From positions 62,001 to 126,000 of IMG/VR virus record IMGVR_UViG_3300032236_000747: a DNA stretch of 64,000 nucleotides; one strand, written 5' to 3'. The translations under genes and the position numbers were made by a program. Numbering within the stretch: position 1 is the first letter of the stretch; each line of letters begins with the position of its first letter. Shown one piece after another: positions 13,706 through 17,891 of the stretch. The notes under the pieces are model-generated. The model saw only the letters and a list, made by a program, of their open reading frames with translations, made no database searches and was not told the DNA's origin.

Positions 13706-13734
13706 TTGACCGTGAACTCCTAGTAGTATATACT
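13706..13734 (+). promoter_or_regulatory. Sigma70-type early promoter
   Basis: TTGACC-17 nt-TATACT followed by an AAGGAG Shine-Dalgarno. Confidence 0.75.
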
Positions 13735-13752: not shown

Positions 13753-14052
13753 ATGAGCAAAGCGTTTGGCGCACCAGAGCAAGCAAAAATTAAACAAATC
13801 ATCGCAGAAGGTTGTACCGTTATGCAAGAGATTCAAGATCTCACCGAAGGTTTGAACGACACCATTAAAGCAGTGGCAGAAGAGCTAGAAGTTAAACCTA
13901 GCGTAATCAAAAAAGCAATCAAAATCGCACAAAAAGATACCTGGGATCAAGTATTCCGTGAGTTTGACGACCTCGAAACTATCGTTGATATCAGTGGTCA
14001 TGCTAACCGCCGTGACGATACTCCAAGTAGCACTACAACTATTAACCCATGA
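13753..14052 (+). CDS. T4 DsbA-like / GapR (DUF2312)-like dsDNA-binding protein
   Basis: EIQDLTEGLNDTIKAVAEELEVKPSVIKKAIKIAQK matches the helical pattern of this family; it lies upstream of DNA polymerase. Confidence 0.65.
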   Translation: MSKAFGAPEQAKIKQIIAEGCTVMQEIQDLTEGLNDTIKAVAEELEVKPSVIKKAIKIAQKDTWDQVFREFDDLETIVDISGHANRRDDTPSSTTTINP

Positions 14053-14348
14053 TAGATGCTGTATTTGGCCCAACTATACAATGGATTAGGGATGATTGGC
14101 GTAGTCATCCTCTACGTTTTGGCGTTGAGCTTATCGCTTGGGCTATTAGTGTTGGTTGTTCGCTCACCATGGCAATCACAGTCCCTAATCCTCCTCTTCT
14201 CCTACTATATCCTGTCTGGATTAGTGGCTGCGCTATGTATGCATGGGCTGCTTACACTCGCAAGAGCTTTGGCATGTTGGCTAACTATATTCTGCTAACC
14301 AGTATTGATTCAGTCGGTTTAGTTAGAATGCTGTTAACACAGCAATAA
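14049..14348 (+). CDS. Small multi-TM membrane protein
   Basis: Three to four hydrophobic helices in 99 aa. Confidence 0.65.
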   Translation: MIDAVFGPTIQWIRDDWRSHPLRFGVELIAWAISVGCSLTMAITVPNPPLLLLYPVWISGCAMYAWAAYTRKSFGMLANYILLTSIDSVGLVRMLLTQQ

Positions 14349-14415
14349 ATATTATTGAGAACGGTTCAACGAGCCATAAGTCGTTAAAGAAATGGTAGGC
14401 CGGCCATAAAACGGT
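14346..14415 (+). promoter_or_regulatory. Structured leader of polB: TAAATA followed by two tandem hairpins with GCCAUAA loops
   Basis: AACGA-GCCATAAG-TCGTT (14368-14385) and GCCG-GCCATAAAA-CGGT (14399-14415), each beginning 5 nt after the start of a GGT. Confidence 0.55.
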
Positions 14416-14432
14416 GTATAAGAAGAATAATA

Positions 14433-17102
14433 ATGAGTTACGTAGATGCAATCTGGGATCGTGACAACGATCTCGTCAAAGTAGTAGAACGTGATCCTAA
14501 AAAGGGTCGCATATATACAGATTTTCCAGCTAGATATGTTTTTTACTATCCAGACCCTAAAGGAAAATATCATTCAATCCACGGCGAAAGCCTGTCAAGA
14601 GTTGTTTGTAAGAACAACAAAGAATTCCAAAAAGAACTAAGAATACACAGCGGTGTTCGTTTATTTGAAAGCGACATCAAACCTGTGTTCCGATGTCTGG
14701 AAGAAAACTATCTAGGTAAAGATGCTCCAAAACTAAATGTAGCATTTTTCGATATTGAAGTGGACTTTGATCCCGAAAGAGGTTACGCAAGTCCAGACGA
14801 TCCATTTATGCCTATTACCGCTATCGCTGTTTACCTACAGTGGATGGAAACTATGGTATGTCTAGCAATGCCCCCAAAGACAATGACTATGGAACAGGCG
14901 CAAGAAGCAGTCAAAGAGTTTCCTAATACATATTTGTTTACCAGTGAAGCAGAAATGTTAGATACCTTTTTAAATCTTCTAGATGATGCCGATGTTATCA
15001 GTGGTTGGAACTCAGAAGGCTTCGACGTTCCGTATACCGTTAACCGTGTTACCAAGGTTCTAAGTAAAGAAGATACTCGTAGGTTCTGTTTGTGGAATCA
15101 AATGCCAAAGAAACGCGAATATGAGAAGTTCGGAAAACAAGCAGAAACATATGACTTTGTTGGACGAGTACACGTTGACAGTCTAGAGCTATATCGAAAG
15201 TACACATACGAAGAACGACACAGTTACAGACTCGATGCTATTGCCGAATACGAGCTAGGCGAACATAAGACACAATACGAAGGCACACTTGATCAGTTAT
15301 ACAACAACGACTTCCGTAAGTTTATTGAATATAACAGACAAGACTGTATGCTATTAGATAAACTAGATAAGAAGTTAAAGTTCATTGACCTTGCTTCAAC
15401 TGTTGCTCACGAAAACACAGTATTAATACAAACTACAATGGGTGCTGTAGCCGTTACAGAACAAGCTATTATTAATGAAGCACATCATAGAGGGTTTATT
15501 GTTCCTTCTAGAAAGAATCGTGATGATTTAACTGACACACAAGCTGCAGGGGCATATGTTGCTTACCCAAAGAAAGGCCTACATGACTGGGTTGGCTCGC
15601 TAGATATCAACTCATTGTATCCAAGTGTTATTCGTGCACTAAACATGGGTCCAGAAACTATCATAGGACAGTTACGTCAAGACTATACCAAGGCTGAGAT
15701 TGATGCTAAGATGGCAAAAGGTTCTTCATTTGCCGCAGCATGGGAAGGTAAGTTCGGTAGTAACGAATATGAGTTTGTTATGTCTAAGGATATTGCCAAT
15801 GATATCATCATCGACTGGGAAGGCGGCCAAACTGACGTACTAAGCGGCGCTCAGATCTACGATGTGATCTTCGAAAGCAACCAACCTTGGATGTTAAGTG
15901 CTAACGGAACTATCTTTACCTATGAAAAAGAAGGCATCATTCCTGGATTACTAAAGCGTTGGTATAGTGAGCGCAAGGAAATGCAGGCCAAACTCAAAGA
16001 AGCAATCAAAGCGGAGAATAAAATTGAAGAAGAATACTGGGACAAAAGACAACTCGTCAAGAAAATTAACCTTAATAGCCTTTATGGTGCTATTCTTAAC
16101 GCTGGGTGCCGCTTCTTCGATAATCGTATCGGACAGTCAACAACCCTCACAGGTAGACGTATTGCTCGCCATATGGCCGCAAAAGTAAATGAAGTAATCA
16201 CAGGAGATTATAATCACATAGGCAAAGCTATTATCTATGGAGATACTGACTCAGCATACTTCACCGCTTACACAAGTCTACGCAAAGAAATCGAAAAGAA
16301 GGAAATCCCTTGGAACAAGGAAAGTGTCATACAGTTATATGATTCTATAGCAGACGAAGTTAACAGCACATTCCCGCAACTAATGTTAAGTGATTTTCAT
16401 TGTCCTAAGAGTCGTGGCGAAGTTATCAAAGCAGGTCGTGAAATTGTAGGCAGTAAGGCATTGTTTATTACTAAGAAACGATATGCTGTACTATTCTATG
16501 ACAAGGAAGGTAAGCGTAAAGACAAAGATGGTAAGCCAGGTGAAATCAAAGCCATGGGACTAGATTTGAAACGCAGTGATACTCCTGAGTTTATGCAGAA
16601 CTTCTTAAGCGAAATCCTAAATAAAGTCTTAACAGGTAGTGAAGAAGCAGAGATCCTAGATATGATCAGCGAATTCCGCACAGAGTTTAAGAATAGGCCA
16701 GGCTGGGAAAAGGGTAGTCCAAAGCGTGCTAATAACATTGCAGAGTATCAATCTAAGGAAGCCAAGCAAGGTAAGGCTAATATGCCCGGACACGTTCGTG
16801 CTAGTATTAACTGGAATACACTCAAGCGTATGAACAATGACAAATACAGTCAACAGATTGTAGACGGTATGAAAGTTATTGTTTGTAAGATGAAAGATAA
16901 TCCACTTGGATATACTAGTATCGCTTATCCAGTAGACGAAATGCGTTTGCCACAATGGTTCAAGGATCTACCGTTTGATCATATGGAAATGGAAGCTACT
17001 ATTATTAACAACAAGGTCGAAAACCTTATCGGTGTACTAGAATGGGATTTATCTTCTACTACACAAAACAATACATTCGGAAGTTTATTCAGTTTTGAAT
17101 AA
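14433..17102 (+). CDS. polB: Family B DNA polymerase (T4 gp43-like)
   Basis: ExoI FFDIEVD, ExoII GWNSEGFDVPY, ExoIII YNRQD; Pol A SLDINSLYPS, Pol B KINLNSLYG, Pol C YGDTDS, and KKRYA. Confidence 0.96.
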   Translation: MSYVDAIWDRDNDLVKVVERDPKKGRIYTDFPARYVFYYPDPKGKYHSIHGESLSRVVCKNNKEFQKELRIHSGVRLFESDIKPVFRCLEENYLGKDAPKLNVAFFDIEVDFDPERGYASPDDPFMPITAIAVYLQWMETMVCLAMPPKTMTMEQAQEAVKEFPNTYLFTSEAEMLDTFLNLLDDADVISGWNSEGFDVPYTVNRVTKVLSKEDTRRFCLWNQMPKKREYEKFGKQAETYDFVGRVHVDSLELYRKYTYEERHSYRLDAIAEYELGEHKTQYEGTLDQLYNNDFRKFIEYNRQDCMLLDKLDKKLKFIDLASTVAHENTVLIQTTMGAVAVTEQAIINEAHHRGFIVPSRKNRDDLTDTQAAGAYVAYPKKGLHDWVGSLDINSLYPSVIRALNMGPETIIGQLRQDYTKAEIDAKMAKGSSFAAAWEGKFGSNEYEFVMSKDIANDIIIDWEGGQTDVLSGAQIYDVIFESNQPWMLSANGTIFTYEKEGIIPGLLKRWYSERKEMQAKLKEAIKAENKIEEEYWDKRQLVKKINLNSLYGAILNAGCRFFDNRIGQSTTLTGRRIARHMAAKVNEVITGDYNHIGKAIIYGDTDSAYFTAYTSLRKEIEKKEIPWNKESVIQLYDSIADEVNSTFPQLMLSDFHCPKSRGEVIKAGREIVGSKALFITKKRYAVLFYDKEGKRKDKDGKPGEIKAMGLDLKRSDTPEFMQNFLSEILNKVLTGSEEAEILDMISEFRTEFKNRPGWEKGSPKRANNIAEYQSKEAKQGKANMPGHVRASINWNTLKRMNNDKYSQQIVDGMKVIVCKMKDNPLGYTSIAYPVDEMRLPQWFKDLPFDHMEMEATIINNKVENLIGVLEWDLSSTTQNNTFGSLFSFE

Positions 17103-17156: not shown

Positions 17157-17891
17157 ATGCAGGACTTATTAAAGGATATCGTTGGACATACACAAAATCT
17201 AGGATTTTTAAATATCGTTAAGATTTCAGGTACAACTAAAGGAATCAATATTGATTCAATGGCTGATGACAGATCAGTTATTATGATGGCCGAAACAGCC
17301 AAGCCATACGAGGATATGCAAGGTGTATTTGGTATGCCTCAACTTAACAAGCTCAAGTTCTTGTTAGAGTGTTCTGAATATAAAGAAAATGCTAAGATTG
17401 AAGTTGTCAGTGCTGAAAGAAATGGTGAAGTTTTACCAGTAGGTTTACACTTTGAAAATGCAGGCGGCGACTTTAAGAATGATTATCGTTTTATGAATAC
17501 AGAAGTCATTAACGAGAAACTTAAAACAGTTAAGTTTAAAGGTGTTACATGGCACGTAGAAGTTGACCCAAGCCTACAAGCGATTCAGCGTTTTGCTTTA
17601 CAGGCAGCGGCTAACAATGAACACACAACATTCTTAGCAAAGACTGATGGTTCTAATCTTAAGTTTATCTTTGGAGATCAAGCAAGCCATGGTGGTGAAT
17701 TTATTTTTGCTACTAATGTAACAGGTAGCCTAAATAAAGCATGGACTTGGCCAGTTGCCAGTGTATTAGGTATCTTAAAAATTGCTGATGTAGGTAATGC
17801 CAAAGTTAGTTTTAGTAATGACGGCGCTATGCAAGTTACATTAGACACGGGCATTGCTGTTTACAAATATATTATTCCAGCACAAGCATGA
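17157..17891 (+). CDS. Sliding clamp (T4 gp45-like)
   Basis: 244 aa directly downstream of polB; alternating alpha/beta two-domain pattern ending in YKYIIPA, typical of phage clamps. Confidence 0.7.
   Translation: MQDLLKDIVGHTQNLGFLNIVKISGTTKGINIDSMADDRSVIMMAETAKPYEDMQGVFGMPQLNKLKFLLECSEYKENAKIEVVSAERNGEVLPVGLHFENAGGDFKNDYRFMNTEVINEKLKTVKFKGVTWHVEVDPSLQAIQRFALQAAANNEHTTFLAKTDGSNLKFIFGDQASHGGEFIFATNVTGSLNKAWTWPVASVLGILKIADVGNAKVSFSNDGAMQVTLDTGIAVYKYIIPAQA

Follow-up and report, generated by a model that had tools for sequence, protein, structure and literature searches.

The short untranslated leader in front of the DNA polymerase gene (polB) of a giant phage folds into two back-to-back RNA pseudoknots. 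The tandem element is conserved, with compensating mutations, directly before polB in more than 200 related viral contigs from uncultivated phages whose polB is about 66–88% identical, and it matches no described RNA family. It is probably a new regulatory RNA that controls how much polymerase is made, though this function is inferred.

The polB locus and its leader

The window examined here is a 64,000 bp stretch, bases 62001–126000 of a 354,680 bp IMG/VR virus record. The ORF at 14433–17102 (+) encodes an 889 aa family B DNA polymerase with matches to Pfam DNA_pol_B (7.6e-39) and DNA_pol_B_exo1. The nearest named phages are the jumbo phages Sinorhizobium phage Phosso (50% identity), Agrobacterium phage Atu_ph07 (46%) and the 121Q/PBECO4 group (about 44%), but no deposited phage was similar at the DNA level. 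Downstream of polB, a 244 aa ORF (17157–17891) matches phrog_12062, which is of unknown function. Its position and size correspond to those of the gene annotated as sliding clamp in Phosso; it is probably the clamp. Upstream is a 99 aa ORF (14049–14348, +) without a Pfam or PHROG match, and 84 nt separate its stop codon from the polB start.

This gap contains two units of similar design (14363–14385 and 14394–14415), each consisting of GGU, a short linker, a 4–5 bp stem, an 8–9 nt loop beginning GCC, and the return strand. Unit 1 is GGU (14363–14365), UC, AACGA (14368–14372), the loop GCCAUAAG (14373–14380) and UCGUU (14381–14385). Unit 2 is GGU (14394–14396), AG, GCCG (14399–14402), the loop GCCAUAAAA (14403–14411) and CGGU (14412–14415), with one G.U pair. 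The heptamer GCCATAA is found on the + strand at 14373 and 14403. Thus, the tandem hairpins with pseudoknot potential that had been described from the sequence alone are present as described, and this observation is confirmed.

Taken alone, the window is not convincing. The minimum-free-energy fold was no better than that of shuffled sequences (z-score −0.85, with 36 of 200 shuffles folding as well) and even prefers a competing hairpin. GCCATAA was not enriched, with 6 occurrences in the window against 9.1 expected.

Covariation of the two hairpins

A lack of conservation or covariation in related leaders, together with no effect of stem or loop mutations on expression, had been specified in advance as grounds for discarding the original prediction. 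When the polymerase was used to query viral contigs, 80 loci with 80–88% identical polB were returned, and their upstream regions share the same layout but differ in stem sequence. In 71 leaders from related contigs, the two hairpins are 93–96% paired, against 17–49% when the partner columns are slid by 1–3 positions, and 9 of the 10 hairpin pairs show changes on both sides. In an ungapped alignment of unit 1 and an alignment of the whole element, the inner four pairs of hairpin 1 are paired in every sequence, with both sides changed in about half of them (for example GC 33, AU 31 and GU 3 at one pair), while hairpin 2 is 95.5% paired with double changes at 4 of 5 pairs. Given no structure, RNAalifold predicted both hairpins, and all 8 predicted pairs have compensatory changes.

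A second set of relatives was reached by walking out from the most distant polB found, which is in locus L164 (L numbers denote the viral contig loci examined) and is 66% identical to that in the window. The same result was obtained. All 10 hairpin pairs show double changes, the closing pair of hairpin 1 varies as AU 18, CG 13 and GC 10, and the GGU:GCC helix of unit 2 is 96% paired. Metagenome contigs beyond these sets were not scanned. One pair of hairpin 2 is G.U in 26 sequences, and the third pseudoknot pair is U.G in 52. As these would be A.C mismatches on the complementary strand, the structure belongs to the sense transcript rather than to DNA or an antisense RNA.

The pseudoknot helices

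To examine the pairing between each GGU and the loop GCC (14373–14375 in unit 1), the 5' triplet was chosen by its similarity to GGU and its distance from the loop, blind to the loop sequence. The triplet and loop are complementary in both units of all 152 unique elements. In unit 1, GGU:GCC was found in 134 elements, GGC:GCC in 12, GGU:ACC in 3 and AGU:GCU in 3. In unit 2, the corresponding numbers are 148, 2, 2 and 0. On a FastTree tree of the polymerases, the AGU:GCU state of unit 1 requires three separate changes, and each carrier has GGU:GCC neighbours, while GGC:GCC requires ten changes and GGU:ACC three. Because the tree is of the protein, recombination between leader and gene would blur the count of events. 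Nonetheless, three independent G-C to A-U double substitutions, with no mismatched intermediates among the sampled sequences, are good evidence that the triplet and the loop pair. Unit 2 shows only single changes. A swapped arrangement, with the GGU of one unit pairing with the loop of the other, was rejected for unit 1, as AGU and GCU change together within unit 1 while unit 2 keeps GGU:GCC.

Each unit therefore has the two covarying or complementary helices of an H-type pseudoknot. The linker L1 is 1–4 nt over a helix (S2) of 4–6 bp, L2 is 0 nt, and L3 is 5–6 nt over the 3 bp helix (S1). These lengths were judged able to span the helices from general pseudoknot stereochemistry, without a 3D model. 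With no junction nucleotide, the two helices can stack into one helix of 8–9 bp, and the A-rich remainder of the loop (N-N-A-A-N; AUAAG in unit 1 of the window) would cross S1 with its adenines along the 3 bp helix, the usual arrangement for minor-groove contacts in small pseudoknots.

The loop is less conserved than originally predicted. Rather than the whole GCCAUAA, the conserved core is GCC, then A at loop position 4 in unit 1 only, then AA. In the close relatives, C at position 2, A at position 4 and the AA of loop 1 are invariant. Over the 152 unique elements, position 4 of loop 1 is always A, but the AA shifts by one position where the loop has 9 nt. In unit 2, where the loop is 9 nt in the window and 8 nt in most relatives, positions 4–5 are free. 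This variation ruled out mimicry of an anticodon loop (CAU followed by AA, as in tRNA-Met), as position 5 in unit 1 is U in 89, C in 53 and A in 10 elements. Pairing of the loop with the start-codon region (UUAUG) was also rejected, because loops with CACAA are common while the coding start is unchanged.

Position relative to the promoter-like motif and ribosome binding site

The hexamer TAAATA (14346–14351), which overlaps the stop codon TAA (14346–14348) of the upstream ORF, is nearly invariant in the aligned leaders. Both it and the element are retained where relatives have a different upstream gene. In the whole genome, ATAAATA is the most enriched 7-mer within 100 nt upstream of ORFs (48 observed, 3.0 expected). 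About 30 genes have TAAATA followed by 4–5 nt and then ATG, leaving no room for a Shine-Dalgarno (SD) sequence, which suggests many leaderless or near-leaderless mRNAs from a promoter like that of T4 late genes. Others have it about 20 nt upstream with an SD in between. TTGACA-containing words are also enriched, suggesting host-type early promoters. The spacing in these genes suggests initiation about 6 nt after the hexamer, and the pattern resembles the T4 late promoter TATAAATA, which initiates about 6 nt downstream. The polB mRNA is accordingly predicted to start at about G14357, the G of GAGAAC 5 nt after the hexamer and about 6 nt before pseudoknot 1. A search for RNA sequencing runs listed none, so the start is an inference, though the TAAATA-N5-GAG spacing is conserved in relatives. 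Six purine-rich nucleotides, most often GAGAAA, precede unit 1. As no sigma-70-region-2 protein was found in the phage, we make no claim about which polymerase or factor reads TAAATA. More distant clades carry other motifs here (TAAGTA, TATAAT-like) while keeping the RNA element, which is therefore conserved independently of the promoter. A sigma-70-like site lies further upstream at 13706–13734, so longer transcripts may also carry the element. It precedes another 99 aa ORF (13753–14052), two genes upstream of polB, that has PHROG transcriptional regulator matches (phrog_639, 4e-07; phrog_12534, 2e-17), and Phosso has a gene annotated as DNA binding protein in the same relative position.

The spacer between the units is 2–9 nt, and pseudoknot 2 ends 8–19 nt (mode 12) before the start codon. 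In 144 elements, the first SD-like word starts −5 to +6 nt from the 3' end of pseudoknot 2 (132 of 140 within −3 to +3). The copy in the window is slightly atypical, with only a weak SD-like AAGAAG (14420–14425) 7 nt before the ATG, where most relatives have GGAG or AGGAG. While most TAAATA-associated genes in this genome have leaders of about 5 or about 20 nt, polB has 81 nt between the hexamer and its ATG.

Association with polB

A covariance model built from the whole-element alignment scored 60 bits (E 7e-17) at the polB leader, and the next hit in the 354,680 bp genome, inside a coding region, scored 14 bits. A loose structural descriptor gave only scattered single hits and no other tandem copy. 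A pattern scan of viral contigs returned at least 120 stretches. Of the 80 loci returned by that scan, 79 have the element immediately before polB, or before a small ORF that lies just before polB, and the other is a chance match without hairpins. The model gave exactly one hit in each of these 79 loci over 693 kb. Some of the polB genes start with TTG rather than ATG (L092, L094, L102, L103, L124, L146, L159, L167 and others), and some of these lack the second codon, giving M-Y-V-D instead of M-S-Y-V-D. The intervening ORF, of 46–53 aa, was found in three lineages (L162, L140 and L090/L256). In L162 (12296–12451) it is Cys-rich and its end overlaps the polB start (ATGA), so there the element would control a coupled pair. 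In the records behind L162 and L140, polB is interrupted (G001:C1:54533-58271 and G002:C1:5379-8974, respectively), with about 1.1 kb between residues about 606 and 606 in the former and about 0.9 kb after residue about 113 in the latter. These look like inserted intervening or homing elements, or split genes. The polB of Atu_ph07 is also annotated as two CDS.

In the more distant clade, the model hit 71 of 77 loci, always just before polB. The sub-clade L247–L252 lacks the element, and in L248–L252 the region just before polB has neither a match to the model nor a TAAATA-like motif; whether this region is coding was not checked. The element is also absent upstream of polB in Phosso, Atu_ph07, 121Q, K64-1 and Vibrio phage 2.275.O. 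Thus, polB can do without it.

Possible functions

The original prediction was that a duplicated translational operator, on the precedent of T4 gp43, or a ligand-sensing RNA controls polB. This interpretation is supported in part: covariation strongly supports the structure, and the exclusive link to the polB leader and contact with the ribosome binding site (RBS) support a cis element, but sequence does not settle the choice of function. We favour a translational operator, in which a protein binds the folded pseudoknots and blocks or traps the 30S subunit at the adjacent RBS, limiting polymerase synthesis. The protein would most plausibly be the polymerase itself when in excess over its DNA substrate. 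A conserved structured leader that is found only on polB, is unusually long for this genome and is pressed against the SD is the signature of gene-specific translational control. The sequence, the hairpins, the pseudoknot helices, their sense-strand polarity, the exclusive link to polB and the position against the RBS were established here, whereas the transcription start, the effect on translation and the binding partner are inferred by analogy and position, without binding, expression or transcript data. We regard the conserved RNA structure as very secure and a cis-acting role in polB expression as likely, but the operator model, and the polymerase as its ligand, are tentative. Every conserved nucleotide (GGU, GCC, AA) can be explained by the fold itself, so nothing points specifically to a protein. 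As the stem and linker type of unit 2 switched about 19 times on the polB tree, any recognition must be of the shape and the small conserved core.

The alternatives appear less likely but, apart from the last, are not excluded. The units could be tandem aptamers of an undescribed riboswitch class, among the smallest known, that tunes polymerase synthesis to a small-molecule signal such as the nucleotide pool or a host alarm, stress or defence signal, with ligand-stabilised folding next to the SD changing translation initiation and two aptamers giving a steeper response. The compact H-type fold with an A-rich third loop directly before the SD, the tandem arrangement with a shared core that is typical of some riboswitches, the preferred U.G wobble in the 3 bp helix of unit 1 (134 of 152, although C-G is tolerated) and the invariant A at loop position 4 of unit 1 are consistent with this. 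However, no Rfam riboswitch family matches three different leaders, even at E<=10, very few conserved unpaired nucleotides are left to form a pocket, and the element is linked to one gene, whereas riboswitch classes usually control several genes of a pathway. By inspection, there is no C-rich anti-SD stretch and no alternative SD-sequestering pairing in the leader; with a conserved compact fold present and ligand binding not assayed, these observations do not decide the matter, and we consider a riboswitch unlikely.

A protein-independent leader, which protects the mRNA from 5'-end-dependent decay or keeps the SD free of competing structure and so sets a fixed level of translation, is equally unlikely. 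It fits the predicted 5' end about 6 nt before pseudoknot 1, the explanation of all conserved positions by the fold and the free drift of stem sequences, but not why only polB among roughly 350 genes has such a leader, why there are two units with the same core, or the strict contact with the SD across more than 150 variants. Another trans-acting factor (a dedicated phage RNA-binding repressor or activator, or a ribosomal protein) or a cis-acting antitermination RNA of the HK022 put type, which is two stem-loops just after a promoter, is more doubtful still. The two structured units lie immediately downstream of a promoter-like motif, and a possible transcriptional regulator gene (13753–14052) is nearby. 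However, with a single copy per genome a dedicated regulator would serve one site, contact with the SD points to translation rather than elongation control, and no terminator-like site lies between the element and polB. A DNA-level element (protein binding repeat, cruciform or origin) or chance resemblance, which the single-window statistics alone would allow, is effectively excluded by compensatory changes that keep pairing rather than sequence, by the strand asymmetry of the G.U and U.G pairs, by covariation of the pseudoknot helix and by conservation in more than 200 contigs.

Comparison with known systems

A search of Rfam had also been named beforehand as a check, and it found no known family. 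Against Rfam 15, which includes preQ1, SAM-II, fluoride, guanidine and freshwater-2, there were no hits at gathering score in the 64 kb window, and at E<=10 three different leaders gave only chance-level hits. The best was freshwater-2 at 13.3 bits (threshold 49.9), which aligned only the SD and AUG. Full-text literature searches on the loop word, tandem pseudoknots and the freshwater-2 motif found nothing relevant. The element would add a new family to RNA databases, and is a small, easily synthesised RNA (about 60 nt) on which the polymerase-binding, ligand-binding and stability models can be told apart. Autogenous translational control of replication proteins is a classic of T4 biology but is known from very few phages, and according to a 2010 review the gene 32 pseudoknot may be the only viral pseudoknot used for translational autoregulation (PMC3014915). 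If the polymerase binds the element, this shows convergent or very divergent evolution of polymerase operators; if a metabolite does, it is a new and very small riboswitch class.

The small pseudoknot riboswitches preQ1-I, SAM-II and guanidine-III share the size class (about 23–30 nt per unit), the H-type topology with an A-rich loop in a helix groove and a position at the RBS, and the guanidine-II riboswitch has two similar small hairpin units in tandem. No Rfam model for these matches, the conserved core is different, the SD here is next to the pseudoknot rather than inside it, and no ligand is known. The rpsO operator of Escherichia coli is a pseudoknot bound by the gene's own product, ribosomal protein S15 (PMC3014915), but it includes the RBS and traps the ribosome, while here the RBS lies outside the pseudoknots.

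In the favoured view, the element would work most like the T4 gp43 and gp32 operators, but with a new architecture of two stacked mini-pseudoknots. The T4/T2 gene 32 pseudoknot is also H-type, with coaxially stacked helices and a very short first loop, and lies in the leader of a phage replication gene, where it is used for autogenous translational repression (PMC3014915). It is, however, single and larger, lies about 67 nt upstream and nucleates cooperative binding along an unstructured A/U-rich stretch, whereas here two small pseudoknots fill the leader and touch the SD. T4 and RB69 gp43 repress their own translation through a leader hairpin that overlaps the RBS (PMC3014915). The T4 hairpin, read directly from the genome, is AGCCU, loop AAUAACUC, GGGCU. 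Like unit 1, it has a 5 bp stem and an 8 nt A-rich loop, which in T4 contains AUAA, and like the element here it lies immediately upstream of the SD in the leader of a gp43-like family B polymerase gene. The AA/AC bases of the T4 loop matter for binding (PMC3014915), and AA is near-invariant in the loop here. However, the element has two units rather than one, each closed into a pseudoknot by an upstream GGU, while the review states that there is no evidence for a pseudoknot in the gene 43 operator. The upper stem and -UAAC-/-UAAA- loop shared by T4, RB69 and RB49 are not recognisable, as loop register and sequence differ and the two are not alignable, so no homology is detectable, and the UAAA or UAAG within the loop here is a resemblance only. 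Binding by the polymerase, and repression of its translation, were not tested here. The T4 operator is thus an analogy and not evidence of membership.
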